From assembly GCA_030704615.1 (NCBI GenBank), contig CM060733.1, positions 37,386,001 through 37,450,000 on the forward strand: a DNA stretch of 64,000 bases, written 5' to 3'. The DNA comes from Takakia lepidozioides (taxonomy: Eukaryota; Plantae; Bryophyta). Both the position numbers and the translations under genes were made by a program. Below the pieces are notes generated by a model, which was not told where the DNA came from, ran no database searches, and saw only the letters and a program-made list of their open reading frames with translations. Of this stretch, positions 7,034 through 64,000 are shown piece by piece (position 1 is the stretch's first letter; every line of letters begins with the position of its first letter).

Positions 7034-7514
7034 AGCTGGCCACGGGATGGATGCAGAGACACATTCGTGCGCTCGAACTCATCCAGTTGGGTCACAAACA
7101 TGAAGAGCTGCGAGATGTCATCCTTCGTGCTCGTAGATATTTCATCCCTCCGTCTCGCACATCCCCAGTTCTGCCGAACTGTAGAGGAGGGATGCGGTTG
7201 TGGGGTGCACGAAATGTGCGAACGAGATGTGTGACTCAGTCGGGGTTTCGTCTCGCCAGGGCAAGGGCTGCGCGCATGCCCTGCTCCATCTCCCTTTCTC
7301 ATACCTTGCTGCCTCCTGAATCATCATGTCTTTTGATCTCCTTTCGCTGCACTGCTGGTAGTGGCCAGCTGTTCTTTTGGTGAAAATAAGGGTTGCAGAA
7401 GTGCATTAATCTGGGGACGCCTCTAGGAGTAGCTGTGTCTTGCTTTCCGCTGTTCTCTTTCCATGTTTCGCTTAGTTTGAACGCCAGTTTGTGGATTCCG
7501 TCCCTTTCTGCACA

Positions 7515-19500: not shown

Positions 19501-22500
19501 GTTTTGGTTAGAACTGTTTTGATGGAGGTGTGGACTTGCAGCTTCCATACATTATTCCTGCTCTGGGTGACTCAAAGATCTGCGCAGAGGGTCGCAAGGA
19601 TCTGTTTGAGTGGCTGAATGGTCAGGTGGCAAAACACAGCGATCAGCTGGGTTTGTTACAGCTGGTTAGGCCTATTGCAATCGGGCTACAGGTACTACTT
19701 TCTTAGAGAGGAGAAGCTGATTTGACTATCTTTTGAAAGTTTTCTGTCGTTGTCATTGCTGCTTTAGCATACCATTGGATACCTTCAGGTTATTCTACAC
19801 CAGAGATTGTTGTGGTTTTGGCAATATGCAGGACAAATCTGTGGAGATTCGAAAGGCAGCTGAATCACTGCTAATGGAGCTTATCAAGGTTTTTGATGTG
19901 GATTCGGTAAGGATGGAAATTTGTAGTTTCCTTTTAACCTCACAGGTTCGGCCAGAAGTCCAAGGAGCTGCACATATCTGTATTGGTGTCAGTTGGGAGA
20001 GGTAGTAAGTATGCAACTATGTGAAATGATCAATAGATTGTTCTTGCTCTCTTATGTGGTTCTACGTTTATCAGTAGTCATGATCAAACGTACCAATTTC
20101 CCCGGATAGCTCAGGATTGGTGTTCGTAGCAGCAGTACAGAGATCAAGTTATGTCTAGAAACAATGGTTGGTTCGAACATTGAATTTTCTTCTTGGCAGG
20201 CATGGAGTGAATGTGCATTTGAAATCCAGGAGTAGTATTAAAATGCTTGGTCCACCTGAACATTTAATTTCTTAAGTCGTATCTCTGGTAGGTGCATCAA
20301 TACGTCAGAGTCTCAAGGCTGGTGTCATTACAGGAGACATGTCCTTGTGCAAAATGGATACCCACCAAGTACATGCTTTTGCAGTTTTTGTGTTTGACCA
20401 TTTTGCAGATGTAAAGTCATCACGGAAGATATGATTATGGGACTTCAGTGCTTCTTGGACAATTATTTCCCATTTGCAAGACTATTGTAGCAAACTGCAA
20501 TGTGATGTGTCTGATCATGTTCATGGTGCTTTCTCTGAGTGTCGTGACCCTGCGGCAAGGCCCAGATCTCATGATAAGTTGATTGATCAGCATGAAACTC
20601 TGTGGTGAGTGGTTGTAATGAAAGTGTGTCCTAAGGCACAGAAGACTGGTGCAGGTGATGAAGGCAGCTAGGGGCATACAGGGCGCAGCACTTTCAGCGG
20701 TGCAGTGTATCATTGACCATCAAAGGTCCCTGAGTAAGTGCTTTGTGTCTGTTTCATTTGGGTCAGTTGGAAACTGTTGAATGCCAGGGGGAGACACTTC
20801 CTGTTTCATGTAGGGAAATTCTTATCTATATTCTTTGAGTAGTAGCTTCTCTACTTTTTCATCCTTGTGAAGAAGGTGGCTGACCAGTTGGTTTTTTCCC
20901 AGACTCAACTGACGAAGCAGGCCTTGAAGTGGTTATGACCAAAGCTGGAGTTAGAAGTAGTAAAGGGGCTCTTAATGGTTCCACAGATCGGGCCTCTGTT
21001 CGATCCACTTCCACAATTAGTCGCGCATCATCCAGCATAGTAAGCGTCTTCTTGAAGAATGGAACTCATTGTGGAAACCGCTAATCCGGAGGGGGGGGTT
21101 TTAGGGAATGTCAGAATCTGCTACTGAATTAACCTTCTGGTCATGGTAGATGGCTTTGGTTAAAGTGGTCCATGCTTTTGGAGTATGGTGAATTTTGGGT
21201 TGGTTTTAGGACTCACTGTGGAAATCTCTTGCTGTCCCCATTGCCTTATCCAAGTTTTACCTGTTATTTGGTGATTCTTCGTTCCAAGGCTTATCTTGTT
21301 TCTAAAACTGATCTGCATCTGTCAATTCATAACAGAGACATTCAGGATCAAAGCTTTCTGCTGCTTTTGTCGATACCCAGGATGCAGCTGTTCAAGGGCA
21401 GGCTCTCTTCATCTTAAAAGATTCACATAAGGTGCTCTTTCTTTCTATGAAGAACCACATTGAGCAACAAAAGTGTACACTCTCTGCTTTTGAAGTGTAC
21501 ACTACAAAGAGCCTCTAAAAAAGGACCATTCCAAGCTTGTCTGAGGGTCTTGCTGAGAATGTATAAGATACTCTTCTTGCCTGACACACCAAGAGTACCC
21601 AATCGAAGAGACAAGCCACTATTCTGAAGACCCTCAAGTCAAGACAGAAAGTTAATGCGAATCATACATTGTCCTCAGCTAATGCTTTTGGCTTCTGGTT
21701 GGGCCATGCTCATACAGCTGGGACAGCAATAAATGCAAGTGAATGATTGAGGATGCAGCTGTCTATGGATGAGGACTTGCACAGAAATAGTTAACTTCAG
21801 TGTGAAGATTTCAGTTTCAGTGGTACATAAATAGTAGGTGTATAGTCGTCATGTATATAGTTTTCACTCTCATGTAGATCTATAGCTAAATCACCTTATC
21901 TGATATATAGGCTGGTTGTTTCTTCTTCATTTTCCAATGAAATTTCTGTGATAAACTTGAGATAGTGCTTATTTGTTGTGCTGTATCTTGAACTATATCC
22001 GGCATAGGATGACTTGCAGATATCTCCCCTGATTTTGATTTTGGGTAGTTTTGAGCCCCCCCCCCTCTATCTTTTCCTGCTTTGATGGTTTCTCTGTGTA
22101 ACACCATTCCTTCGCCAAGAGAACAAACTTTTCGATAGCAGGACAGTCCAAGGTATCAACCAGCCTAAAAGTTCTAGCAACAATTGCGGTTTCCTGAGTA
22201 CATCAAGCCTCAATTCTGATTTGGGATTTTAATCTATATGTTAAGGGGGTGACTGCAGGTGGACAGAGAAAAGGCAGTATTACGCAAACTCAAATTTGAA
22301 GATCCCAGGCGTGAGCAAGTACTAGATGTAGAGGTGGGAATGGCATTGCACCCTCATTTGTTAGGACTCTTGGAGTCATGGACACCTTGTTTATGTGTTG
22401 ATGGTCTACATGGAAATACCATCCCTACAATTGTCTCTTGTCCATCTACCATTTTGTGCGTTCTGTGAGGAAGGCAGAGAGAAGCTTTGAAAATTCTCTG

Positions 22501-25500
22501 ACGCATTCTTTGCTGCAATGCTGTGACCTGCAGATTGATTTGGCCAAGTATTTCCGCGAAGATTTGCACCGAAGGCTCTTAAGTCCTGATTTTAAGAAGC
22601 AACTCGATGGCCTTGAAATGCTCCAGAAGGTTTGTTATTCACTTCTTGCTAGAGCCTATGTTTATCGTGAACTTGAAAGCGTTTTTGTTGAGAATAAATA
22701 GTGTTTCTTGGTATTTGCAGGCGATCCCACTTCATGTGAAAGAAATGGTTGAGATTTTGGACATTGTTCTCCGCTGGAGTGTTCTACGCTTCTGCGAATC
22801 TAATACGACCTGTCTCCTCAAGGTGATTGATGTGCAATATGTCTACAAGATGTGCTGAGGATGTTCTTACAAGTAATGGACGTTCTGTATCCCTGCTCGT
22901 AGTTCAGCATATTGGACTCTGATTCTGTGTTTGCTATGACACCCAGGTCATTGATTTCCTCTTTGAGTTATTCGAGGCTTTGAAAAATGAAGGCTATGCT
23001 CTCACTGAGCACGAGGGAAGCATCTTACTTCCATGTTTGGTGGAGAAGGTATGGGACACATTGGCTGAACCATATTGATATTCTAATTGTTTGTCAGTTT
23101 TAAATGACCTGCAATACTGTGTCAATCGAATTACAGCTTTCTAATGTGCGAGTTTCTTGTGTCAACTGCTATGAAACTGCAAGTCTTTGCAGAGACAGTT
23201 GGATTCTTACCCTCTGTTGTGTCAATTCCTGGTTGCAAACTGGGTGTATGTGAAGCAGATCTCCAGTATGCTCAGCACAATGTTCTTTTGTAGACTTTTT
23301 TCAAAGACAAGTTTGTTTTCTCTGCAGTCAGGACATAACATTGAGAAAGTTCGTGAGAAGATTCGTGAGTTAACCAAACTATTGTCCAGCATTCATCCTC
23401 CATACAAAGTTTTTCCTTTTATTGCTGAGGGACTACGCTCGAAAAACAATCGAACGAGGATTGAGTGTGTCGAGCACATTGGATTTATGATTGACCAGCA
23501 CGGAATAGAGGTAAGTTGCAATCAAGATGTTTCACGTTGGTCATGTAGCAGGTTTGAAAGCTTGGTTTTCAATCTACTCACTAGGATCACTTCAAACGTG
23601 TGCATTGGTGGTTTGATAGCAGGATCCTGACAAGTGGCTTCGAAATGGCCACCTTAAGGCCGTAGTATACTTCTCTAGCCTGTTTCTGGTTGGTCCTTTC
23701 ACGTACTGACTGACCTGATCTTGTTTCTCACTTTCTGATACGCAGATTAGTGGCTCAACAAAAGCTTTGCAGTCTGTTGTGGGGCTCACTGTAGAACGTG
23801 ACAGTGAGATTCGCAAAGCAGCTCTTCAAACGCTGGCAATCGCTTATGAAGTTCTTGGTAATTCATTAGACTTGCATCCTGAATTTTATTGTTCAGCTAG
23901 AAATTATAATATCGAATTGAAACTCACTTCTGCTACTCTGGACATTTGTACGGTCCTAGGTTAGACAGAACATTCTGCTCACCTGTTGATTGCATGATAG
24001 CACTGCTCTTAATGGACATTTTAGGCCTCTCAATCTGCCCTCACCTTCTTGTTGTGGCTTGATGTGAAATATGACAATGAGGGAAGAATTTACATGCATT
24101 CCTTGATTCAAATTGGCTCCAGGTGAGGACATATGGAGGTATGTGGGCAAGCTGTCTAGTGCACAAAAAGGCATACTCGATGAGAAGTTCAAGTGGAAGG
24201 TCAACATCTATGCTATTACTCTTTACTTTCCATTTATGTAATGGGTGCAAATATCAAGTCCATAGTGAGGCATTGGACGCATGACAGGAACATTTGGATG
24301 CAAAGAAGTCTTGAATTAAGTGGCTTTGTTTCTAATCTTGAAATGAATAGTTTTCCCACTGATCCAGGCGCGTGAAATGGATAAACGAAGGGAAGGAAAA
24401 CCTGGCGAGGCACGAGCTGCTGAGGCCCGAACAGCTGCCGTAAGACGGTCGGCTCTGGACAATAGGTATGTTCCATAGCCCAATCCACATGAGCCCCACC
24501 AGGTGTTCAGTGTTTTAGCTGCCTGTATTGTTCTCTGTAAAGTGTGCAGATAGTTTTTGGGCAAATCACACACAGCAGATTGATGCTTGTGTGAAGGGAT
24601 TTCTAGAGGATATCTGGAAAACCCGGATTAATTCTTTATATGGAGGTAAGTCTTACTACCAACGTCAGCCCCTGACAGAGGTAGGTTCTGTCCCTTTTGT
24701 TCCCGCTCAAACTGGGCGCGGGGTCAATGGCCACAAGGCTACGGCAAACAACGTCTTATGAGTACAATCTGTAAAGTGTGCAGTTGTCTGTTAATCTTTT
24801 TGCGAGGCTTAGGGTTTTGATGGATGAAAAGGCCAGAAGTGTCTCCAAGTGCCCCCACCACACAATGCTTTTTCCTCTTAGCCAATCAAACGATTCATTC
24901 TTTCTCTCTCTCTCTCTCTCTCGTTAGCTTATCCCTCTGTATCAGCCCCATCTTCAGTTGTCTGAAGACATAGCTACCCTGGGAGAGAACTAAATATTTC
25001 ATTTAGAATCTAGTTTGTCATCCATTGTATTATGAGGCGGGATGTTGTGTGTGACAGTTACTAATCATGAGAGCTGGCTTTACAACTCTCAATGGTTACA
25101 CGTACTTAAGTTCACACCTGTGAGTAGTTTCGTGAATATTCGTAGATGCAAATATAGATTAATCACAATTGTCCACCTTGTTGGTCTCAATTGCAATCAA
25201 TCTGCTTCAGTATATTAATGGTATAGTTTTTCTATTATCTGTGGCATGTCAGTGCTGGAATCAGCAATGGACACATAGATGTGCCCATGGAGCTGTCACG
25301 TTCAGGAAATGCAACTGTGGGGTGTTCTTTAGACTGGAATGAGGCGCTGGACATCATCAACTGTGCGACATCTTCAGAGCAGGTCTGTAAACCTCACAGC
25401 TCCCATTTGAAACCAGTAATTGCATACAGAGGGTGGGTACTGCTGGGCTCTATTTGTATATAGCTGGGTAAGGAAAGCTTGAGGGAAGGTAGTCACTAGG

Positions 25501-33959: not shown

Positions 33960-36900
33960 TTTGGGAAAAATCAACCCCATTGATGCCATAAGGCATGATA
34001 CACATCCATGGGATGAGGGACGAGCCCGAGACATAATCAAGAGAGACTGCCGAACCGGCCATGACGAGGACCAAAAAGGTCCGGGGATGAGAGGACGGGC
34101 AACCATAGTCAACCATACACCATGCAGTTCAATGATGCATAAATGCAGAAAATTAAGTGTTGTGTTGTACCCCTACGAAGAAGGATCAAAATTTGTAACT
34201 GCCTGCCTAGTGAGGACTTTGACGAGCATTCCGAAGAGCCCGGGAAGAAAGACGATGTGATCAGTGATCGAAGTTGAACTTCAGCGAACTCTTGCCCTTG
34301 ATGTGTCTCCAGTTGATGTCGCAGTCGAAGTCTAGCGATTCAGGGCAGTGGCGAGTTGCAATTTCTCCATTCTTGAGGGATGGAAGTTGGCAAAAGAAAT
34401 TGAGCTGAAACACGAAAGTTGCCCATAACATTTTACCTTCCAAGAGATTTCCGACGAAGCCAATGTCCTTGATTTGCCGGCACGGGCATGCTCCATCGAG
34501 ATGAGCAATGACGCCAATACGGTCTTCAGTTTGGATCCCACACCACAGGACTTTGAAGACATTGGGATTCTGCAAAACAATGTCGAATACTACTCGCTCC
34601 ATCACCAATGCAAACCAGTGCAATGCGTCATCCACCACAAACTTCTGTGAATGGTCTCTTCCATGGAGTAAGTCATCCTCAAACTATGCAGATCCTTCAT
34701 CAACTTGTTGTATGAGCGGAAATTGCCAAATTGCATCCATCTGTGTTGTAGAAAGGAAGCTGCCATGCGCTCAAAGTCCTCCTCAGTCAATCCGAACAAG
34801 TGCTTTCTTCGCACCCCAAAGGTTGGATGTGCCATAGGCATATGTCTGAGGTCTTCAGGCCGTGGGTCATCCATGAGAATCAGCTGCACAAGTAGAGGCG
34901 GCGCATTTTGGTCGCTTGTGGCTTCAATGGCAACAGCAGAGGCGGCTTCCAGAACATGGTTGGCTTTCTCAATAGAAAACTCCATGGAATAATGAAAGGG
35001 TACAAATGACCACCGGCGGTCCGCAACAATCCGGTGGAGCTCATTATGCCAATCCAAATGGGGATTAATTTCTCCCACCCTAAGCCGAGGAAGTGTGAGG
35101 TCTTTAGCTCCGGGTCGAATTACCGGTGATGGCGATCGCCAAACTGCAAAAAGCGTCGTGCTATGTGAGAAAAAGGTAGTCTACTGGTCAGTCTGCTGGT
35201 CCGCAGTCTGTTGGATGACAGGACTTCCCATTGGCATGGGCTGCATGATGGGCTCCTGGAGAGGAGTCTGCAGGATGACAGGCTGCTCGTTGGGAGTTTG
35301 CTCCGTAGGAGTCTGCTGGATGACAGGCTGCTGAACGGGAGTCTGCTGGATGACGGCCTGCTGAATGGGAGTCTGCTGGATGGCAGACTCGGCTGTCCCA
35401 GACGCATTCCCCCCTGACGCGTCTTGAATATGTAATGCCGCTATAGCAGCAGATGACCCAGGATACTTCAATAATATGTACTCTCGCACGCGGTCCACTT
35501 CCGCATGCGCAGTCGCTTGTAAAGAAGCATCATTGCTAGGTATCCGCCAAGCCTGAATGGCCCTACGAATGGAAACACGTTCATCCTGATACACGATAGA
35601 GAACTTGGACGTCAGGAACATGGACGTGGACTCTATATTCACCTCATGCAGCGGACTGGACTCACAGACCGGCAGACTGTAACGTGCGTACGTAGGGTGG
35701 AGGCAACTAGTAGACTGTACCAGTGGCCTGGACCAGCGGACTGACAAACGGACTCAGTAAGTAATGCAGCGATATAAAACAGACTAACTGACGAGCGGAG
35801 TGAGCCAGTGGACTGAGGAGAGAACGCAGCGGACTGACCAGACTGAATAGGCAACGTGACCCCGATGATGGACTCAAACAACACAGAGAACGGACTGGGC
35901 GGTCAGACTGACCATTACCTCCTCTACTTCATCATCGTCATCTTCATCTTCAAAGCTGTTCAACCAGTTCTGTTCCGCCTGTCGGATGAATGTGCGTAGC
36001 AGACCTGACTGGGCAACTCTGTAGAAATAACGGAAGAAGTCCGGATCCCTAATTGGTGGGCACTATGGTGGGAAAAGCCCAAAGTCAACGAGGTGCAATG
36101 TGCCAGGGCAGACTGGCCCTTCAGTGCTCTGTTGAGTTTTTGGTTTTGACCCTAAACCGATGGCATGGGTCATGATATTTGTGTGAGTCTGCTGCTGAGT
36201 CTGGTCAGGCAAGTCAATGTCCACTGGACTTGTCACCCCTTCCAGGCCCTGAGCAGATTCACTTTCAGTATCAGTACTGATGGTGTGGGTCTGCCGCCCA
36301 TAACGGGGTTCAGTCTGTTGCGTGGATTTTGCCCTTGTCTCGTGAGCAGACCTTTTAGCCTTCTTTTTTTTTTGCCTCTCCTTTTTTTGGGCCCCATCAC
36401 TCAGTTTACGTTTTCTGGCAGTGTCTGGCGTTCCCTGCACTTGCAAATCTTCCATTGACGGGCCACCAGAATGGACGCCATACCGTGCGCGCACTTCGTC
36501 TAATTCCAAAGTGCGGGGGTCAAGCACTGATCCGTGCAAGCGCATTGTGGCCTCTTTGACAATCAACATTTCTTTCAGTATCGGCCAAGGCTTGAAATCC
36601 CATGGAATCATTGCAATAGTCTCCTTGCAACCCGTGTCAACACAATGCCGATTTAGTTGGATTTTGTCCTTGATAACCTCTTCACAGAAGGGACAGAAGA
36701 GCTTGTCCTTCTGCCAATTCGAGTTTTTGGGCTTCCGGGCGCGGAGCTCTACAAATGCTTCCACTATTTTATGATCAAACTCGTCTGGTGAGTACCAGTA
36801 CCTTCGCTCCTTCTTTAGTTTGGTTTGGTGCACAAAATCCACCCAGTCCGCTCCACCCTTTTCACAAGCATCCTCTATCGCTGCAGAATGAAACGAAGGT

Positions 36901-37100
36901 GCAATGATATTGAGCGACAGATAGAAGTCCTATGAAAAGACTCACCCTAAGCAAGAAGATGACACATAATGGAATGGAAACACCGCAGCAAGTGAGAACC
37001 TCACCAAGTCGATGAACTTCGAGTTGTTATGAAGGCAAGCGTGTTTGCGACGCTTCGCGGCTCACCGCGACTCTCCACACCTGGGGAATAACGGCCGTCT
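33960..37100 (-). pseudogene. Degenerate spliced gene: C2HC zinc finger, NLS, Q-rich repeat, BAH-like domain and partial C5-cytosine DNA methyltransferase domain
   Basis: ORFs 36063-36842, 35181-35747 and 34602-35078 share one frame, broken by TAG stops and a GT-AG intron (about 35587-35918). Motifs: CPFC-x12-HC-x4-C; RKRK..KKKKAKR; BAH-like AVAIEA..APPLLVQL..RPEDL..KHLF; FVVDDALHWFALVMER; motif IV GVIAHLDGACPC (PC at 34480-34485); motifs VII-VIII GYNTTLNFLH[26-nt insertion]MVDYGCPSSHPRTFLV. Confidence 0.62.
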
Positions 37101-37379
37101 TTCGTTACGGTGATGGAAACGCAAAGAGGAAAACAAAACAGTGCAAAACAGTGCGAAGAAACAGGCGCGAAGAGAATGGAGTCGATCGCACAGGGAACAT
37201 GAGAAGAAAGTAGAAGTAGAAGGGGGAAAGCGGGCATGGCACTGCCAACGTGGCGCGATTTCACAGGCGCCAACTATCCGCCGTCATTGCATTGAATACG
37301 TCCACCGAACGAACGCATCGTACTAAATTCATCCACGGTCCTCGCAAGTGCAACAGACTCATTTCCCATCGGGCCGAGA

Positions 37380-38945
37380 GTCCACCGAACCGTCAGTCCA
37401 GCGGACTATTCGCTTTGCTGAGGTGAAGCGGCTTCATATTGGAGGCACTTCCCTGCCAGCGGAATGAAGACAAAAGAGAGTAAGGGGAGAACAGGAAAGT
37501 CGAACATACCCATTGCAAACAGACTCGCGGCACAACAGACTGATGCATGCACAGTCCAATAGACTGATATCCATAGAGGAGAACTGTCCAGCAGACGGGC
37601 GTTTCACCAGACTGGCGAGAGAACAAGCCAAAACATTGACCGGAGGGAAAATAAGAAGTCAAACAGACTTAGTGCAACAGACTTCTGACACAACAGACTG
37701 ACAAATTCACAAGTGCGACAGACTGATATCCCAACAGACGGACTTCCAGCAGACCGCCTCCAAACTGACTGTTATGCACGCGATAAGGGGAATATCCGGA
37801 GCATTGATGGGCCAGCGGACCCACTGTGAACAGACTCGCGACACAACGGACCTCAAACATCCACGCGCATTTGCAGATGCAATTGTCTCAGCCTGGTCCG
37901 TCTCCTGGCAAATGCGACAATGTACCGATTCTGCACCTACTCCCGTCGTGGCTCAGACATCTGCATTCAGCAGGTGCATGTAGATGTTTGAGGACCTTAC
38001 GACTGGATGGTGTTCCGTGACGACTTGAATTGTTTTTTTGTGCTGCCATCCCTTATATAATACCATGTGGATCCATCACAAAGCTGAGTTTCTTCAGATT
38101 CTCCACTTTTTTCCACAACTTATGCACGACGGATGCAAGGCGCTATACTTGGTCATATAAACAGTCCCATCGTCCGATACGAAATCTGCAATACACGCCC
38201 CCATGTGCATACGCTTCCGCCATTTTCGCGCCCATGTTACCCATGGGTTCCTTTAACGGATCACGGCTGTTTGTTGTCCGATGTTGCGGTAGGCGTTTCC
38301 ATGCACGCGACTGTTCCTCTTTTGTGCGCGATGTTCATGATGATGATGAAGCGTATGCTTGAACATGAGAGGACTGTCTCGGCACTACAGCCACCATCAT
38401 GCATATGCTTCCACTATTTTTGCCTTCTTGTTGTGCTTTCGGGAACCTTCGTTTTATGGTTTGGTTCTATGTCATAAATATGGCAAATGCGGACATCTGT
38501 CGTCGATAACGTCCTCTACTTGTGATCCGTCATGATACGTTTAGCCCCTTCGTACTGCATCCCTCGCAGCCCTAAAAATGGAGGGTTCGGATGGGTTATG
38601 GGAATGGACGGTGGCGATCCTGCGCCGTCAGCGGACTGGATGGCAGGGGACTGGCGGGCGGACTGGCGGACTGGCAGACTGTTGGGCAGCGGACTGACCA
38701 ACACCGGACTAGCGGGCAGACTGGCGGACTAGCAGACTGGCCAGCAGCGGATTGGCAGACTGGAGGGCAGCGGACTCATGGGCGGGGGACTGGCCGCGCG
38801 GCGGACGGGGGCGCGGGCGCGGTTGCTGCAGCCGCGCCCGCGGCTGGGCGACCACGCGCAGCGGCGGGCGGGGTGCTAAGAAGCCGGGCGTCCGTGCGCG
38901 GGGCCCACTGGCCACATCGCACGTGCCCATTGAAGACCCTATTAT
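37380..38945. mobile_element. Putative transposon subterminal/terminal region upstream of the BAH-C5-MTase relic
   Basis: Dense short motifs cagact/ggact(g) at 37390-37860 and 38630-38790 (also in the 35700-35910 intron); very GC-rich end at 38790-38940 with an abrupt change to AT-rich DNA. No partner TIR found, so the superfamily is unassigned. Confidence 0.45.
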
Positions 38946-39240
38946 CTTAAAATGAGAGGCGGGAAAAATAACCTCACATGACATGCCATAGTGTTAGCAT
39001 TGAATTTTGGTTGGGATAATTGGAGGGAAAATAAAAAGTTAAAATGCTCATTCGAGCCATGAGTCATATACACTGAAACAGTGAAGGACAGATATCGAGC
39101 CAAACAAAGAGCATGACATCAATAGCACTGCGAAGGGAGTTTCAAACAGACCCAAAAACAATATACCTAGTAGAAAAGCTGCAGCACTATTTGATGTGTG
39201 TACTTTCAGAGAACAAGATGAGAGACCTTGTTGATCTTGC

Positions 39241-41758: not shown

Positions 41759-42280
41759 GTAAAACTAAGTATCAGGAAGGTAGACTCAGGATTCAGTTGA
41801 GTATCTTGTGTTTATTTGGGCTTGTTTGGCCTCTGGATGAGGTGACACCTTTGAGTTTGCCCCTCTTTCAGGTCTTTTGCATTTCCACAGGAGATTGCTT
41901 AAACAAGATACTCACTTCTTTGTCAGCATCTCATGGTCTGCTTTTAGTGTAACAGAACAAGCATTCACCTTTCTGCCTCAATTGCCCCACCATTAACTGG
42001 TTTTGAAAAAATATTTTTTCCAAAGCTTCTCTCCTCATCTATATTTTTGCTTTTGGGATATCTACCTGGAACTTCAGTAGCAGTCCAATTTGGAAACACT
42101 CATACCCACTAGATCCACCTAGACAACTTTGTCACATATGTCATTCCCTCTTGCACATTTTTCAGTCTTGTGAGAAAGTCCACATGGGGCAACTGTTTGG
42201 TTGGTGGTAGAGGCATTTGCTATGTAAGCTATGGCTTATCATCTCAGCTTTGGGGGTTTGGTGGGGGGGGGGAAATCTAG

Positions 42281-44643
42281 GAATGTTTGTTATGGAGGCA
42301 TCGATAACTGAAGAAGGTAGGGATGGAGTGTGGTTGCAGATCCATCCTCGAGGACCAGATTTCAAGCAAAACAGTGCCAACAAGGCACTGATGATTGATG
42401 CCTACAAGGAATCTCCATGGGTTGATGGTCAACAGGAAGCAGGGGCAGCCCAATCGTTTGAATCGGGCGTAACGACTGCCATTGAAAGAAGACCAAGAGA
42501 TGGAGTCCACCAGAGCTCTTCTGGCACTTACGGGGATGTGAGGACACTATGTAAGTCAGGGAAACTTAAAGATGCATTGCACATTTTGAACCAAGGGGGC
42601 TTTACGGCAGATTGCAATACTTATGTCTGTCTCTTGCAGGCATGCATCAGGAGAAAAGGCCTAGCAGAAGGAAAGCAGGTGCAGGCCCACATTATCCAAA
42701 GCAGATTCAAGTCAAACATCTTTCTACTCAATATCCTTGTTGACATGCATGTCAAGTGTGGGAGCATCGAAGATGCACGCGTAGTGTTTGACAAAATGTG
42801 TGAACGAGATATGTGTACATGGAATGTAATGGTGGCGGGATATGCCAAGCATGGGTGTGGTAGGGAGGCTTTGGAGACCTATGAGCAAATGATATGGGAA
42901 GGGGTGACACCCAACCAGGCCACGTTCTCTTGCGTTCTGAAGGCTTGTTCCAGCCTGGGTGACCTGGAGAAAGGCAAAGAGGTCCATGCTGACATCATGA
43001 GAGTCGGAATTGTACCAGATCTCATTCTGGACACTACCCTGATCAACATGTATGCCAAATGTGGCAAAATAGATGATGCGCGTCGAGTGTTTGACAATAT
43101 GGCTCAAGTAGATGTGGTCTCATGGAATGCAATGATTGCAGGATATGCTCAGCATGGATATGGTAGGGAGGCTTTGGAGATCTACGAGCAAATGATATGG
43201 GCAGGGGTGACGCCCAACCAGGTCACATTCGTTTGTGTTCTCAATGCATGTGCCAGCCTGAGAGCACTGGAGAAGGGTAGAGAGGTCCATGCCGACCTCA
43301 TCAAATCCAGAATTGTGCCCAATATCTTTCTCGACACCGCCTTGGTCGACATGTATGCCAAATGCGGGAGCATAATTGATGCCCGTCGAGTGTTTGACAG
43401 TATGCCTCAACGAAATGTGGTCTCATGGAATGCAATGATCACAGGATATGCCCAGCATGGGTGTGGTAGGGAGACTTTGGAGACCTATGAGCAAATGCTA
43501 CAGGAAGGGGTCGCACCCAACCAGGTCACGTTTGTCTGTGTCATCAATGCTTGTGCCAGTCTTGCAGCCCGGGAGAGGGGCAAAGCAGTCCATGCTGACA
43601 TCACAAAAGCCAGAATTGTGCCAAACGTCATTCTGGACACTGCCCTGGTCACCATGTATGCCAAATGTGGGAACATAAATGATGCATGTCGAGTGTTCAA
43701 CAATATGGTCCAAAGGAATGTGGTCTCATGGAATGCGATGATCGCTGGATATGCTCAGCATGGGTATGGTAGGGAAGCCCTGGATGTATTCAAACAAATG
43801 CAACAGGTAGGGTTGAAGCCGAATGGTATCACTTTTATATGTGTTCTCTCTGCATGTAGCCATGTGGGTCTAGTGGATGAAGGCAGACACTACTGGGATT
43901 CCCTGAGTCGAGATCATGGCCTCAGTCCTACAGGGGAGCATTTTGGCTGCATGGTGGACCTTCTTGGCCGTGCAGGCCACTTGAATGAGGCAGAGGACTT
44001 AATTAACAAAATGCCAACAAAACCTGAGGCTGTGGTGTGGAAGGCCTTGCTTGGTTCCTGCAGAATTCATGGCAACGTGGAGGTGGCGGAACGTGCGGCA
44101 AAATACATTCTCAAGTGGGATCAACAGGATGCGGCAACTTATGTGCTGCTGTCAAACATCTATGCTGCAGCTGGCAGGTGGGACGATAGTGCAAAGGTGA
44201 GAAAAATGATGAAGGTTAGACGTGTCAGGAAGGAGGCAGGTCGTTGCTACATTGAGGTCGATAACAGGGTGCATACATTCATTGTAGACGACAAGTTGCA
44301 TCCACAAATTGAGGAAATCCATGCTGAGCTGGAAAGACTGTCTGGGCAGATGAACGATGCTGGGTATGTGCCAGACACTCGCTTTGTATTACGTGATGTG
44401 GAGGAGGCGCACAAAGAGTTTTCTCTGTGTCACCACAGTGAGAAGCTAGCCATTGCTTTTGGGCTGATCAGTACCTCCGCTGGAACACCTCTGTGTGTCA
44501 TCAAGAACCTTCGTGTGTGTGGTGACTGCCACACAGCCACCAAGTTCATCTCAAAGATTGTCAGGCGAGCAATTGTTGTACGGGATGCCAGTCGTTTTCA
44601 CCACTTCCAAGATGGGGTATGTTCTTGTGGAGATTACTGGTGA
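42281..44643 (+). CDS. PLS-class PPR protein with E1-E2-DYW cytidine deaminase domain (organellar C-to-U RNA editing factor), main exon
   Basis: Uninterrupted ORF: L-S-(P-L-S)x3-P2-L2-S2-E1-E2, PG-box-like KEAGRCYIEV, HSEKLA...CGDCH zinc ligands, terminal DYW. The true 5' end is probably in upstream exons; candidate acceptors lie at 42280/1 and just before IHPRGPDFK. Confidence 0.96.
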
Positions 44644-48727: not shown

Positions 48728-56627
<7,900 letters not shown>

Positions 56628-57045
56628 CTCTCTTAGCAAAAGCTACAGCCAGGCTCCCGCTCTCTTAGCGACTTATCTTTCTCCCATCCCTCAAGAGGTC
56701 ATCGAGCTGCGGCCTTCAACCCTAACCTCACAGCCACATCTGCCCCGTCCTCCCTAACGTCCTCGCAAACCTGCAGCCATGATTCCTTGTCGTCTCTCTC
56801 CCTCCCTCTCCGATCATCGAGAGCTCCAACCCTCGCTCCTCGCTCGTCTCTCTCGTCTCTATCTCGCAGCTCAGTCCCCCCGACTCTTAGGGCACTGCCA
56901 CCACGCGGCAGGCGGTCCTGCGCTCAAAGCCACACACACACGCCATTTTGTACCGCACGGTAGGTCATCGACACGCGGAACTGATTCAACTTCCTTTTCC
57001 TGGGCTGTTTTCAGCATATATATTTTTTTCAGCATATTTATTCCT

Positions 57046-57645
57046 ACTTTTTGCTTAAGAAGAACTTATACATATCTCCCCAAGGAAGCGCAAATTATGG
57101 TGTCACCCCAAAGGGCTACTATCTTTCGGCAGGAGAGTGGACTTTTTGCTTAAAAAGAACTTATACATGTATGGATACATGATGCCTCCCCAAGGGAGCG
57201 TAAATTATGGTGTCACCCCAAAGGACTACCATCTTTCGTCAGGAAGGTGGACTTTTTGCTTAAAAAGAACTTATACATATATGGATAGATGACGCCTCCC
57301 CAAGGGAGCGGAAATTATGGTGTCACCCCAAAGGACTACCATCTTTCGTCGGGAAGGTGGACTTTTTGCTTAAAAAGAACTTATACATATATGGATAGAT
57401 GACGCCTCCCCAAGGGAGCGGAAATTATGGTGTCACCCCAAAGGACTACCATCTTTCGTCGGGAAGGTGGACTTTTTGCTTAAAAAGAGCTTATACATAT
57501 ATGGATAGATGACGGAAGCGTAAATTATGGTGTCACCCCAAAGGGCTACTATCTTTCGGCAGGAAGGTGAACACACCAATCGGTGGATTGAACCCACTCT
57601 TCCGAGGGGTAAGTATGTGCCCATTACCATTGGGCTACAACTTAA
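57046..57645 (-). repeat. tRNA-derived SINE whose 3' half plus flank is expanded into about 5 tandem units of 110 bp
   Basis: actttttgctt recurs at 57046, 57141, 57251, 57361 and 57471. The SINE head on the minus strand (A-box tagcccaatgg, B-box ggttcaatcc) lies at about 57580-57645. Confidence 0.9.
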
Positions 57646-58007
57646 AGGGGCCCATGAAAATGCTTTGATCAAATTAAAAAAACAAGAGAGAAAAAACGTT
57701 GAAAACGACGGTAAGGCAAATCCAATGCTACCACCAGGAGTAACATAGAAGGATTCTAACGCAACTTCGAGAGCCTGAGCTGGTGGACTTGCATGTTTAG
57801 TTTTTAAATAGAATTATTCTTCATCTGTCAAATCTGACTGATATTAAAATAGATAATAGGGGATAGAGGCCCTGACAACTTTATTTGGAATTATTTGATG
57901 ATTCCGTATGTCACTTATTCTCTATTCTTAGCCAAATATTTACTAATATAAATATATATGTGTGCCTTTTTTTCAAATAAAAGGGAAACCCGGGAGTGCC
58001 CAGGGAC

Positions 58008-58185
58008 AACCAAGTTGTAGCTGAGTCGTAATGGGCACATACCACCTCGGAAGTGGTTGTGGGTCCCGTCCACGGATTGGTGTCACTAGGGTGTCCACCT
58101 TCCTACTGGAAGACAGTAGCCTTTCGGGATCAAGAGACACCATAATTTACGCTTCCTTGGGGAGGCGGCATATATTATTATTATA
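58008..58185 (+). mobile_element. tRNA-derived SINE, same family
   Basis: tagctgagtcgtaatgggcacataccacctcggaagtggttgtggg...gacaccataatttacgcttccttggggaggcg, then a (tat)n tail; B-box decayed. Confidence 0.85.
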
Positions 58186-58580
58186 TTGATAGTAGAATTC
58201 AAAGGACAAAACAAACACATAGACATGACCAGGAAAGGGAAGTCCTAAGTTGCAACAAGTTTAGTTCAAAAAGTCAGCGGTTCAACAAATTCTAAATATT
58301 CGACAGAGATTATGGAAGTCTTTTGATTCCGGGCCATTTTCAATTGCATCTAAGGCAGCAAGCAACGTGGGTGTGGGAATCTGGCACAGCGGCCACCATT
58401 GACAGGGGCAGTAACCACAAGTCATGCCGGTTCTGGCCGAAGTCCTCTCCCTTTCATGGGCATGTAATATATAATGCCCTAAAGATACCGGCATTGAATC
58501 ATGGGTCGAACCTATTGCCCATGCATTAGGGCTTCATTAAATTGTGCCCCAAACCTCATTTGTAATGCCTTAAACATACT

Positions 58581-58694
58581 TTGGAATGGCCCGGAAGATG
58601 ACATTCTGCCTAGTGAGCTGCCTGCCAAAAATAGTGGCAAGCGCTAGGCGGGCAGTGCAAACGAGACAGAATGTCATATGCCGGACCATTCCAA
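58581..58694. repeat. Fold-back element (~30-bp arms plus inner stem)
   Basis: tggaatggcccggaagatgacattctgcct versus the reverse complement of the right arm, tggaatggtccggcatatgacattctgtct (26/30 identical); inner ctgcctgcc/ggcgggcag also pair. Confidence 0.8.
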
Positions 58695-59074
58695 TGGGTA
58701 GTCCATTCTGACTACGGACGGCCGGAAGAAAAGGCCCTATGTATATCTGCCTGGAAAAGGTCAGGTTTTTGCTTAAGAGACCTCAAAAGCGGCAGAATTG
58801 CCTACTTACTGACCATTACGAATGCATATTGCGCAGCTGCGTGCCAGCACAGTGGAGTGACTATCTGCTGCGTCTTTGCCCCTAAAAAGGCACAAGTAAT
58901 CTGCCCCCAAAGTCCTTTGATGTTTGCACTTTACGACCAACACAGATTGTGGATATGGAAGGTGTTAGGGTGGTCTGAAATCCAGCTGCATTAATTACAA
59001 TTAGGGAATGTCCTCTTAGCCCTAATTGAACTTTGAACGAAACAGTATTCGGCTAACTCCAGGAAACCTCAAGG

Positions 59075-59165
59075 CTATATATATACATTTTGGTATATGA
59101 CGCCTCCCTCAGGAAGCGTAAATTATGGTGTCTCTTGACCCCAAGGTTACTGCCTTCCGCTAGGA
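59075..59165 (-). mobile_element. 3' fragment of the same SINE family
   Basis: gacgcctccctcaggaagcgtaaattatggtgtctcttga is the reverse complement of the family 3' end. Confidence 0.8.
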
Positions 59166-59949
59166 ATCTCAAGGCTACCCTTGTCAGCCGGCGAGGAAAA
59201 TTTACGCTGAGCAGATTCCAATCTGACATGATGAATTTGGCATCACAAGATCTTAGAAGATGTTCTGATAAGTAGTGATGCTTGGGGTCATACGCGGAAA
59301 TCCCTAGGAATCCATTCCGGATCTCGGCACTCTACAGGCCAATTGAACTGCTACACATTATTACAATTGAGTCTTCGCTGGGTTTCTAAACATTCCCAAT
59401 GCAAAGAAAAAATGTGGAGCTAATTTATACATGCGGAAAAGTAAAATTTTAACAAATTTTATTTTGGTATCAACTTGGTGGGACAGTCTTAGTCATATAT
59501 TTCACAAAAGGGCATTTCCAGTGAAGTGTGGAGCATAATGAGCACATGGTCGACTGAGGATGTGTGCGAATGGTGCCCATAATATTGTCCCAAGTAGTAG
59601 CCACTTACAAAGTTTAGACACTCCAATAATGGATGTTTCATGAACTGAAAACAAAACCATACAATGATTGGGCCATGATTGTAGAATTGTTGCTGGCTAG
59701 GATTCATTGATCACATTTACTAATTAATGGTAAGTAAGGGTCTTGAAAACATTCAATGCTCCCTCACTGAAGCCAAAAGAAGAAGAAAATGATGGGTGAT
59801 TTTTACATTATTTCAGGAAAAAAAGAGAAAGGCAGCTAAGGGCAGCCTTGATAAAATTAAGAGGCAAGGACAAAATAACGGAATGAAGGCTTCCAAATGG
59901 GGCACAGCAAGAAATCAACCCACTCTTTTAGATATATTTGCTGCGGCCA

Positions 59950-60115
59950 TAACTAACTTGTAGCCGAGTGGTAATGGGCACATACCACCTCGGAAGTGGT
60001 TGTGGGTTCAATCCACCGATTGGTGTCACAAAGGTGTCCACCTTTCTGCCGGAAGGGCCGGATGAAGACACACCATAATTTACGCTTCCTTGGGGGGCAT
60101 CTTATTATTACTATT
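59950..60115 (+). mobile_element. tRNA-derived SINE with intact Pol III boxes
   Basis: A-box TAGCCGAGTGG (59961-59971), B-box GGTTCAATCC (60005-60014), family 3' end caccataatttacgcttccttgggggg, and a tta-type tail. Confidence 0.88.
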
Positions 60116-61744
60116 TGCTATATTTATTGGCTGACTTCTTTTGGCGGCGTTGTAGATGACAAAAAAGTGACCACCAGTCTATAGTACTCTAGTTGGATAG
60201 AACACTGAGTGCTACAAAGATGATTCTGGGTTCCTAATACTTTGTCGGGTATGTTCTTCTTCCACCTGGGTCCTTCTTGGTGCCTCATGGCGAAGTTACT
60301 ATGAAAGAGGTTCTTTTCTCCTATAACTACAATGAATGGTGATTCCCTCCTTGGCAAGGGCCTGAATTGTGAGCAGTCGCTCCCAAGTTTCCTTTTGAAG
60401 AAAAAATAAAGAAAAAAATGTGATTTGCTCCCTGGTGTTGTCCACCTAAAAACATTTTAAGGAAAATATGGATGAAAAAATGAGTTGGAGGAGCCCTAAC
60501 ACTCCAATTCTTTGAACTTTTCTTAGTTGTGCAATATTTCCTATGTAACTTATTAACCAGATATGCAATCCTGTCACGTTTCACATGTACAGGGCAGAAC
60601 CAATAAAAACAACTAATAAAGACATAATGGCTCATCTTATGAGATGCAGTGTTTTTTTTTTGTGCGACAATTCGCCACTTTTCGAGGAAGAAATTGGCCT
60701 CACGAAATCAACAAAAGGAATAATGGGTTAAACTATGGCACTATTTCGCATTACTGCCATCCCTAATGCCATCATGTCGTTGCAATGAGGACGTTGCCTA
60801 TACTAGGGAAAGAGCCACATGCCATCGGGTTCGTTAGATCTAGCTGATCTTGTCTATCAATTTCTAGAAACCCTACCAGCGCAAGGAGCAAAGTCTTGGG
60901 TTCAAACTCTTCCCGAGCTATGGAGGGAACTTTCGTTTAGGTTTCGCTTATCTGCCTAGTATCCGCTTCACGCACCTCCATTTAAGCATACTTGCACCGC
61001 CTCTTGCACTGGCACATGAGGCTTTTGAGCACAGTTGTTGAACTTGGATAAGATTAGTCATATTTGTCAATGGATTGTATCCATGTGACAGAGTAGTACG
61101 ACGCTTGGTTGCCTTTGTTTCCACAACTTCTTTGCCTTGTTATGATCTATACAAAACTTTTAAGGTATTCCAGATGTGTTTTTATTTATGTTTGTTCGTC
61201 TATACTAACATGGTTTGGTTCTATAGGTCCCGCCCTGTGCTGCAGTGGGCAGTCTTCGTGGCTGAGGTTCAATTCCTCCACATGGCATTTTCGCTCAACA
61301 ACATGCTTCACAATATGCAGTGTCGTTGTTATTTAGAGAAAATTGCCTCTCTTGTCGCTACCACGAACAGAACACTACATGAGTTGAGTTTGCATAAAAC
61401 TCATCAAACATTCTTGATAGTAGCTACCGGTTCCAGATCACATGCCACAAAGTCGCCAATTGATCTTCCTCATAGGCCAGCAAGGAGCCAACGTGGCTCA
61501 AGTTCTTAAATGATGAAAAAGCTGGTGAGATGGCCCCAGATCACCGATGTGACAAGCAAACTTGGCTAATAAGTTAGGAGAAATTATTAGAAAAAAAATT
61601 CTCTCTTTTTTGTTCTCCGGAAATAATGTAGAGCCTTTGATCACAAACTAACTTTGATCATTCATTTATTTCGACATGTTAGTATGGGATATTCGGGCCC
61701 AGAAAAATAAGTTAGAAAAATAAACCTCTTTTCTGAGCATTACA

Positions 61745-61848
61745 GGGGCAGAGCCCCAACCTGAAGGCATAGAGACAGATGACTGGGGTTTGAACCCCAG
61801 ACCCACAGGCCAATACACGAGTGGCTTACCATCAAGCCACAAACCTGT
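61745..61848 (-). mobile_element. Second tRNA-like SINE head (different family) or tRNA-derived relic
   Basis: A-box TGGCTTGATGG (61839-61829) and B-box in a T-arm-like hairpin CTGGGG-TTCAAA-CCCCAG (about 61800-61783); no full cloverleaf. Confidence 0.55.
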
Positions 61849-61876
61849 TGTGTAGAAAGATTAACTACTCATAATC

Positions 61877-62300
61877 CAGGGATGCCTCGGCGTGAGCGCG
61901 TGAGCGCAACCGCGCTCACGCCACGTCACCTTGAACAAACGCCACGTCACCGGGCTCACTCCACGTCGTCGAGCTTAAACGCCACGGCAACGCGCGCCAA
62001 GTAAGAAGCAGAGTGTATTTCCACGGAAGAGCACCCTCAACCGCGGAAACAAGTTCGACGAAATAATAAAAGGACGTGGTCATCCCCACCTGAAAGTAAC
62101 AATTGAATGCAAGATGGATGAATGTAGAGTGGATGAGAAATATATGGATATGTGGGAACAATGCAAGCGAATGGATGAATATGGGATGGATGTTGAATGG
62201 TGGAAAACATTCTTGAATGGAGGATGCATGAATACACAATAGATGAATGCACAATGGATATGACATGAGTGTGAGGGGTTTAGGGGATGGATTCATGAAG
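61877..62300. mobile_element. Putative hAT-like transposon terminus and subterminal region
   Basis: Begins CAGGGATG (matches the start of the Ac/Ds TIR); 12-bp inverted repeat ggcgtgagcgcg/cgcgctcacgcc; repeated gccacgtc motifs, then ggatga/tgaatg motifs. The other end would be outside the window. Confidence 0.5.
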
Positions 62301-62424
62301 ATTGACATTTGAATCCGAGTAGATTGTTTGATTCATTTTCTTTTCTGCCGGAACAAATGCAATGAGGCAAGGGAATTCAATGAGTTCTGAATAGGATATA
62401 AATAGAACATAAAAAATGCGAAGT

Positions 62425-64000
62425 TCAGTCTGATTCAGAGTCAGTACAATGTATCCCCGCGTCCTCTGCATCCAAGTCCAAGAATTTAAGAACTCTGGAT
62501 CTACGATGGCTACTCCTGCAGTCGGGCAATAAGAAGTCAGGGGATAGAGCCTCGGCCATTTCAAATACCATTGCTTCGGCATAGACATGAAGCACAAAAG
62601 TGGAAAGGGGAATGTCGAAAACAGTCTCGGCACAAATGGGGGTTTCTCCTGAAGATCCATCGCTGTCGTTCCTGCAAGTCAAAGCATGATAAAAGTTATT
62701 ACTGCAATTTTGATGTATGCGAAATTGAACAAGCACCCAAACTGGAATGACATTTCCATGGCCAACTTACTCACATGAGAAGTCGTTGTCGATATGCTTA
62801 TCCTCGGTATCTTCATCATTTCTGATTTGAATTTGTTCAGTCTGTGTGCCAGACGTAGAGCCAAACACAAGAGGGAGGATGACACTCTTGAATAGTTCGG
62901 TGTCGCCCTCCATGCCAAAAAGGCTTCTCCCACCAACCTTGCAAGCACAGTAAGTCGCACCTGCCAAGACAGAAAGCCTCAAGAAGGTTGTAGAGGATGC
63001 AAAATCGGATGCAAACTGGAAGACCTTGAGAATTGAAACAGTATTGAACCAACGAACCTGTGGATAGTGTGAGGTCGACCACCCTTGCAGAATGGTGGCT
63101 GCATGACTCCAAGAGCGTCTGTATGAGCGCTGGGGTTCTCTCCCTTGCACCTCTCCACGGAAACCCGTCTGGTCTTTTGGCTGTCTGACTGGAGTGCATG
63201 GAATTGTACAGCATGTCATCCACATGCGGTTCATATGGGGGGTTGATAAAACACCCCTGGTTGGAAATTTCAAAGTTGCGAACGGATGAAGGTGTTTTGG
63301 AGGTGCGAATCCGCCTCAGGCAGATTGCCTCAAACATCCTTGTCTGGCAAAGATGCAAGGTAGGAGTGAGACATAGAAATTCGAAAGAAATTCTGGCGCA
63401 GGAAAGAACAGAACATGGACTGCAAATATAAATGGAAAGTTTTTGTGATGATCGGTGCCGATCATCAAATATGGTGGTAGAGCAAGCCAGCAGAAACAAC
63501 TGAAAAGACATTGGGAAATACTTCAGAGTAGGGCGGTGTCATACCAGCTGTCTAGGGCAACCACCTTTCAGAAGGTACAGGATGTTCACACAATTCCATG
63601 TCCTCAGAATTTCGAACCTAGACGACTTCAGGTATGATGCCAGACCCCTACGACTATCCTTATCACCTGACTGGAAGAGCAAAAGCGTTCCTGCATCTGA
63701 AAGGAATTATTGCAAAATCTGAATACCCAACTCCAGTAGTTCTCATCGAATCTGTTCCAGGATGGAGTCTTTCCCTTTGCAGGAACGTCGGGGACAGGCT
63801 GGCCGTGACCATGTCAGCGGCAAAGGGTTTTTGAACACCGCATATGAATGAGGGACCATTGCTCACCTGCAGCATACAGGTAGAATTTCAAGTCAAACAG
63901 AAATGAGGATTCCAACAGAAACCATCATCTACATTGGCATACACAATTTCGAAAGTCCCATGTGAAGAGGAAGATTCTTACCAGATTAAGAAATGAAATC
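62425..64000 (-). pseudogene. Intron-containing relic of a beta-class N4-cytosine/N6-adenine DNA methyltransferase; exons 63982-64000, 63545-63866, 63058-63343, 62771-62960, 62425-62671
   Basis: Reconstructed: FAADMV-[deletion]-(Y)GQPVPDV...PSWNRFDENYWSWVFRFCN-FLSDAGTLLLFQSGD...LASYLKSSRFEILRTWNCVN...|TRMFEAICLRR...WRGARERTPALIQTLLESCSHHSARVVDLTLST|GATYCACKVGGRSLFGMEGDTELF. Motif order is IV-VIII, TRD, X-I-II. Four phase-compatible GT-AG introns and two frameshifts. Confidence 0.75.

Follow-up and report, generated by a model that had tools for sequence, protein, structure and literature searches.

A decayed, probably Mutator-like transposon copy in Takakia lepidozioides carries part of a spliced accessory gene from a methyltransferase-like family without the canonical motif IV

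We analysed a 64,000-nucleotide (nt) window of the Takakia lepidozioides genome (contig CM060733.1, positions 37,386,001 to 37,450,000). Within this window, positions 61877–64000 belong to a decayed copy of a large, Mutator-like DNA transposon, of which they comprise the 3' end and the right terminus. In the reading that we favour, the element would carry palindromes of its own and, head to head with its transposase, a spliced accessory gene in which a ParB-like exon lies close to the start and the end encodes a domain resembling beta-class amino-methyltransferases (MTases). The intact proteins would bind the element's CGG-NN-CCG-cored palindromes, a proposal to which we give an even chance. 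The MTase-fold domain would act as a probably non-catalytic module that binds DNA or S-adenosylmethionine (SAM), and the accessory protein would protect the element from silencing or maintain its expression, a task that VANC performs in VANDAL Mutators. Judging from sequence comparison, we assign a probability of roughly 0.45 to this mechanism as a whole, that is, to a mainly non-catalytic, VANC-like anti-silencing role.

The gene lies on the minus strand at 62425–64000, where five exons are joined by four phase-compatible GT-AG introns, and it is truncated at the window edge. An initial annotation, made from the letters alone, had proposed these exons, and the peptides that it quoted are all present in the window sequence. 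Exon-sized relatives were gathered from ENA, JGI and Logan samples and are cited below by locus (L). Two candidates, P0010 and P0030, were unrelated and were excluded. The features of the gene and of the transposon end are as follows.

63982–64000, minus strand: last part of the upstream exon, truncated at the window edge; the gene runs on beyond
63867–63981, minus strand: intron 1, GTAAGA..CAG, phase 0; position and phase equal in L088, L089, L008 and L084
63545–63866, minus strand: exon 2, from the motif IV region to motif VII, with two frameshifts
63804–63808, minus strand: site of a 16-nt deletion relative to L001, with loss of motif IV (D-I-P-D in close relatives)
63707–63708, minus strand: site of a 1-nt deletion relative to L001, the second frameshift
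63344–63544, minus strand: intron 2, GTATGA..CAG, phase 0; 201 nt, versus 88–99 nt in five relatives
63446–63467, no strand: 22-bp palindrome in intron 2, with 10-bp arms, a 2-nt spacer and the core CGG-TG-CCG; candidate self-recognition site
63058–63343, minus strand: exon 3, with the last core strand, a variable loop, WRGARE, the motif X helix and motif I (DLTLST)
62961–63057, minus strand: intron 3, GTTCGT..CAG, phase 1; interrupts motif I
62771–62960, minus strand: exon 4, with the end of motif I, motif II (GR..FG.E.D) and an acidic tail
62672–62770, minus strand: intron 4, GTAAGT..CAG, phase 2; donor position equal in L001, L008 and L088
62425–62671, minus strand: exon 5, C-terminal tail and stop codon; weakly conserved, aligning briefly with the last exon of L001 (E 0.015)
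62104–62266, plus strand: degenerate TGGATGAA-rich repeats between terminus and gene end (families D7, D11 and D14)
61898–61921, no strand: 24-bp subterminal palindrome, GCGTGAGC-N8-GCTCACGC, with identical arms at the L001 end (1778–1801)
61877–61990, plus strand: transposon terminus, beginning CAGGGATGCC, with subterminal 40-bp repeats; marked by a depth jump, a loose-end consensus and repeat D17, and matched by the L001 and L095 ends

The exon model is not a chance construction, because relatives share the codon positions and phases of its introns. Introns 1 and 2 were recognised in L088, L008 and L084, and intron 2 in five loci altogether; the position and phase of intron 3 are kept in four loci and those of intron 4 in three. 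The gene family, with unchanged introns, is also present in other plant samples, while searches of viral contigs, phages and plasmids returned no relatives. One contig guessed to derive from RNA (X6 record 31, covering window 62825–63685) is ~97 nt shorter from exon 2 to exon 4 than it would be with two normal introns, a weak hint that this relative is perhaps transcribed and partly spliced. The shortfall is about the length of one intron, but members of the family differ in exon and intron length, and we did not count this contig as proof of splicing.

The window copy is a dead gene copy with two deletions in exon 2. The 16-nt loss relative to L001 removes V-L-D-I-P-D, which is motif IV, and a public contig (X5) reads A-D-I-V-I-L-D-I-P-D across this first break (63806/63807). 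Near 63704, the site of the second frameshift, other copies carry one base more than the window copy. The pieces of exon 2 were matched by the family hidden Markov model with E 4.6e-9 and 2.5e-13. The initial annotation was right in calling the copy dead and in placing a deletion on motif IV, but the D/S-P-P-Y that it expected at this site is D-I-P-D in the relatives. Though many copies are broken, the protein is, on the evidence of codon substitutions, maintained by purifying selection. The comparison of L008 with L088 gave dN (nonsynonymous divergence) 0.087 and dS (synonymous divergence) 0.85, a ratio of 0.10 over 155 codons; for the window copy and L001, the corresponding proportions of changed sites were pN 0.37 and pS 0.79, the latter saturated (217 codons).

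A large transposon family clearly has an end at 61877. In a run from the same species, summed contig depth, which is not equal to copy number, was ~60 on the unique flank and 3,000 to 124,000 from 61877 onward, and loose contig ends at this position began CAGGGATGCC. In one run, 1784 contigs mapped on 3.5 kb, most of them divergent (80–99% identity). Locus L001 has its terminus, CAGGGGGAATGC, 452 bp beyond the stop codon, with the same 24-bp subterminal palindrome, and its element is inserted in the reverse transcriptase of a long interspersed element (LINE). The terminus of L095 is CAGAGGAATGC; the L001 and L095 ends are alike in kind and their flanks differ. We concluded from the depth jump, the loose ends and the similar ends of L001 and L095 that the terminus is real. 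The distance from the stop codon of the window copy to its CAGGGATG terminus is 548 bp, in agreement with the ~550 bp, and the subterminal repeats, of the initial annotation. Its further claim that the gene is carried by a transposon is upheld by the same observations and by the transposase-linked relatives described below. The CAGGGATG 8-mer by itself is not significant, and four further copies of it in the window lack the subterminal motif. These four CAGGGATG or CATCCCTG sites were considered as the partner end and rejected for want of this motif, and no second element copy or transposase was found within the 64 kb.

The layout of the element was read from relatives. Contig L088 (10.3 kb) holds most of one element. 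A 707-codon transposase open reading frame (ORF) on the opposite strand comes first; it is followed by an array of palindromes, then by an exon encoding a G-N-H-R motif and last by the exons of the MTase-like domain. The L088 transposase shares Atlas features of 0.95 with Mutator-like clusters (PF10551) and has the motifs FDH, FKGFMAD and CLFH; a Pfam search with it gave no match. Locus L005 shows the same layout in a decayed state at 43% identity, and in both loci the accessory gene lies on the strand opposite the transposase. The G-N-H-R exon, termed ParB-like here, is conserved across L084, L088, L003 and L005, and a GT donor marks its end, on the strand that also carries the MTase exons. 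In eight contigs the ParB-like and MTase exons are on the same strand, ~2–2.7 kb apart. Beyond the window edge, the layout of the window copy is very probably the same. The initial annotation had found the gene and missed the intron-2 palindrome; the ParB-like exon, upstream in relatives, was not visible to it. An insertion of a pogo/Tc5-type DDE_1 element (L005 5450–7021, L006 98–1447) separates the decayed transposase from the ParB-like exon.

Similar arrangements have been described in algae. Sola1-1_Ec32 of Ectocarpus has an 1104-amino-acid ParB-like and N4/N6-MTase gene opposite its transposase, and the accessory protein was proposed, as a prediction only, to bind and modify its own element (PMC12477816). 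It resembles the window family in being a DNA transposon whose second gene, on the opposite strand, joins ParB-like and N4C/N6A MTase domains. The likeness is one of domain layout; Sola1-1_Ec32 is a Sola1 element of a brown alga, whereas the present family belongs to a land plant and is Mutator-like. In the red alga Bostrychia, a gene of Plavaka elements that joins ParB to an oxygenase lies beside arrays of inverted repeats, and an adenine methylase is encoded by a separate gene (10.1101/2025.02.11.637652). The Plavaka accessory genes PAG2 and PAG3 of Bostrychia and related Chondrus Mutator elements share with our family a ParB-like protein beside inverted-repeat arrays and, within the cassette, an N6-adenine methylase domain; homologues sit on Mutator elements, as here. 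Unlike here, the red algal domains are split over two genes: in one, ParB is fused to a 2-oxoglutarate (2OG) oxygenase, and in the other, the methylase is fused to a SET domain.

A functional parallel to the favoured reading is found in Arabidopsis, where VANC binds to motifs that recur in VANDAL Mutators and strips these elements of methylation (PMC5735166). VANDAL/VANC has been cited as the only transposon system known to bind and modify its own sequence (10.1101/2025.02.11.637652). Like the window family, VANC is an accessory protein encoded by Mutator elements, and its cognate sites recur in their non-coding parts; its anti-silencing function is proven, whereas for the window family we infer it. 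To our knowledge, VANC has no ParB or MTase homology. We found no literature report of a ParB-MTase accessory gene in a land-plant transposon, in a survey that covered subscription papers thinly. The family differs from the predicted algal class in its host (a land plant), its carrier (a Mutator-like element) and its motif IV. Through a conserved, multi-copy land-plant version with a defined candidate site, the algal ParB-MTase prediction can be tested in genetically tractable plants.

The assignment to a beta-class amino-MTase-like fold is sound. Profile searches used single exons or natural ORFs in place of the joined protein, which lowered their sensitivity, and Pfam gave no MTase match, hence none to PF01555, on the separate window exons. 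A phmmer search with exon 3 returned 10 real relatives. Exon 3 alone gave no match in a word-index search, nor did PDB sequence searches with the exon profiles give any real one. Relatives matched phage DNA-MTase PHROGs with E 0.003–0.009 in the correct part of the profile. We then compared family exon profiles by hhalign with a reference profile of 31 YhdJ-like phage and bacterial beta-MTases, chosen for having motif IV, using 40 column shuffles per exon profile as controls. Exon 2 gave a probability (P) of 88.6 and E 2.7e-6 (score 42.3, best shuffle 18.8), exon 3 gave P 74.7 and E 2.6e-5 (34.7 versus 19.0), and exon 4 gave P 75.8 and E 2.3e-5 (29.6 versus 18.0). The three exons align collinearly to beta-MTases, with the motif order IV to VIII followed by X, I and II.

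Structural comparison led to the same class. For P0099, a natural ORF in which intron 2 is read through, the model had a predicted local distance difference test (pLDDT) score of 47; when it was searched against 48,161 chains, the top 20 were all beta-class amino-MTases. Structural Z-scores were 7.4 for CcrM, 7.2 for M.MboIIA, 7.0 for M1.HpyAVI, 6.5 for N4CMT, 6.4 for M.PvuII and 5.2 for METTL3, and the best match had a root-mean-square deviation of 4.8 over 159 residues with the permuted Rossmann fold. An Atlas fold search gave mostly rows of PF01555 clusters. Foldseek, with both models, gave weak rows only and did not separate DNA from RNA beta-class enzymes, and a wide structural search with the exon-2 model alone was uninformative. 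The beta-class domain of the initial annotation was thus confirmed as MTase-like by collinear alignment, structural ranking and Atlas fold rows. A DNA-type rather than an MT-A70-type enzyme is likely from motifs X-I-II and the weak profile hits. The family shares its motif order and fold with CcrM, M.MboIIA, M.RsrI, M.PvuII and YhdJ (PF01555); it differs from these bacterial enzymes in being a spliced eukaryotic gene, in falling below the Pfam cut-off and in having D-x-P-[DE] in place of (D/S)PP(Y/F/W).

This last difference holds for the whole family. All 52 of the distinct relatives have D-x-P-[DE], or a form close to it, as motif IV: DIPEG in 24, DAPED in 6, DTPSG and DAPEN in 4 each, DAPDG in 3, and similar forms in the others. 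None of the 52 has an aromatic residue at the fourth position, and (D/S)PP(Y/F/W) was never seen; the 31 control enzymes, which were selected for the motif, all read DPPY, SPPY or DPPF. In beta-class enzymes this aromatic residue stacks the flipped base. Activity as a writer of N4-methylcytosine (4mC) or N6-methyladenine (6mA), as the initial annotation proposed, is doubtful because the residue is absent from every relative, and such genes should not be annotated as 4mC or 6mA writers. The family may be a pseudo-enzyme or may have a new chemistry, a question posed by the family-wide change in motif IV. Among other transposons, DIRS1 retrotransposons carry MTase domains judged inactive (PMC4738411).

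An active amino-MTase with a non-canonical motif IV could nevertheless be envisaged, which would be guided by the palindromes and would write 4mC, 6mA or another SAM-dependent mark on its own element. The first Asp and second Pro of motif IV are nearly invariant, many relatives keep the SAM-binding motifs (motif I often as DLTVGTG, with DLTxGTG or DLTxSTG and the acidic motif II residue), purifying selection is strong, and the algal counterpart is predicted to make 4mC or 6mA (PMC12477816). That MTase is predicted there to be active, whereas here the base-stacking aromatic is missing in 52 of 52 relatives, the second position of motif IV drifts among I, A, T, L and M, and the Phe of motif I is replaced, with DLTLSTG in the window copy. 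On balance, we consider an active enzyme of this kind unlikely.

The candidate binding sites were compared between the window and L088. The L088 array (4608–5060) comprises six palindromes between the two genes, all centred on the 8-bp core found in intron 2 of the window copy, with outer arms that differ. The CGG-TG-CCG 8-mer is expected 0.25 times per 64 kb and was seen twice in the window, the second time without extended arms. A fixed core with element-specific arms would look like a family of cognate binding sites. Palindromes occur both at the terminus and inside the element, which would also suit a structural cofactor of transposition, without any epigenetic function, that serves in end pairing, transposase loading, target capture or passage to daughter nuclei. 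The clamping and bridging of DNA by ParB-family domains would fit such a role, and so would the altered catalytic motif. The terminal palindrome, with its GCGTGAGC arms, is however unlike the internal CGG-NN-CCG core, which suggests separate binders, and the intronic and intergenic positions of the internal sites resemble those of VANC targets in non-coding regions (PMC5735166). A purely structural role is therefore, in our judgement, quite unlikely.

A further account, which builds on the domesticated 4mC/6mA writer and the hAT-like terminus of the initial annotation, is a host-domesticated 4mC writer beside a hAT end, related to DN4MT1 of Marchantia or N4CMT of bdelloid rotifers. We regard this account as largely refuted and very improbable. 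In its favour are the common beta-class fold, with the structural match to N4CMT, and the identity of CAGGGATG with the opening 8 nt of maize Ac. The resemblance to Ac ends after these 8 nt, the transposase linked in two independent loci (L088 and L005) is Mutator-like, and the termini differ in sequence among relatives, of which the fetched loci gave one terminus each; for these reasons the hAT label was dropped for Mutator-like. Domestication is unsupported because the gene is multi-copy cargo beside a terminus. MpDN4MT1a/b (10.1101/2021.02.12.428880) and bdelloid N4CMT (PMC8885841) resemble the family as bacterial-type beta-class MTases in a eukaryote, but they are low-copy host genes with proven 4mC activity, whereas the present genes are of high copy number and have neither TSPPY nor SPPY. 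Motif IV of MpDN4MT1 is TSPPY (10.1101/2021.02.12.428880), and we concluded that the family, with no aromatic residue there, is not a DN4MT1-type writer. An MT-A70/METTL-type protein that acts on RNA, such as the element's transcripts, is likewise highly improbable: METTL4, METTL14 and MTA1 were among the top weak Foldseek rows (E 0.003–0.02) and METTL14 is a known inactive beta-class partner (PMC4738411), but the motif X-I-II pattern follows the N6_N4_Mtase family, MTase profile matches were to PF01555 and phage DNA-MTase PHROGs only and never to MT-A70, and the full structural search put bacterial DNA enzymes first.

Several results weigh against the VANC-like, mainly non-catalytic role that we prefer. 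Relatives reached only E 0.06–0.15 against PF01555, under the gathering score, and the P0099 model is poor, as its pLDDT and its Z-scores under 8 indicate. The ParB call is weak, since it draws on the G-N-H-R motif and a PHROG match over that motif with E 0.23; the exon had no match in Pfam, NCBIfam or PDB, and none to P1 ParB, whose collected sequences were near-identical. The transposase and ParB-like exon of the window copy lie beyond the window, and L088, from which they are extrapolated, is only ~30% identical. The available parts of L001 and L084 contain no CGG-NN-CCG site, and the palindrome core was selected after both loci had been inspected. In a more specific version, land-plant Mutator elements would carry a two-part module for self-recognition, bacterial in style: a ParB-like clamp would load on the element's palindromes and the MTase-fold domain, with its undescribed D-x-P-[DE] active site, would write a mark other than 5-methylcytosine (5mC) or block 5mC methylation by the host; we consider this version possible but somewhat unlikely. 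If this version is true, plants would have a second, independently evolved, sequence-specific anti-silencing system besides VANC, and the beta-class MTase fold possibly a new chemistry.

The remainder of the window contains other repeats and genes. Just outside the transposon end, 61775–61850 (minus strand) has an A-/B-box-like sequence and a small hairpin, possibly another head of a short interspersed element (SINE) at the insertion site. One small repeat occurs as a 110-bp tandem array and as scattered copies in either orientation (57076–57572, 58008–58175, 59080–59142 and 59951–60095); in two of its copies the head is A-box and B-box-like, in the manner of a tRNA-derived SINE, and ARAGORN and Rfam found nothing in the copies at 57076–60095. 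A second, separate repeat at 60617–61552 has high contig depth and unique flanks. At 33960–39000, a GC-rich block resembles a transposon and has CAGAC-rich repeats and several ORFs on the minus strand; Pfam and NCBIfam searches of its open ORFs gave nothing convincing. An open 815-codon LINE reverse transcriptase (50187–52634, minus strand; RVT_1, E 1.5e-33) sits between pieces of an AGC-type kinase gene (~48728–56639), with a short peptide repeat at both ends of the ORF. An intact PPR-DYW ORF occupies 42217–44643 on the plus strand, and its 808 codons include an unusual N-terminal extension; it indicates a host with organellar RNA editing, as the initial annotation had supposed. On the plus strand, exon-sized ORFs at ~7490–25000 presumably belong to a MOR1/XMAP215 TOG-domain gene, and the window starts with what we take to be an isocitrate dehydrogenase exon (1–327).

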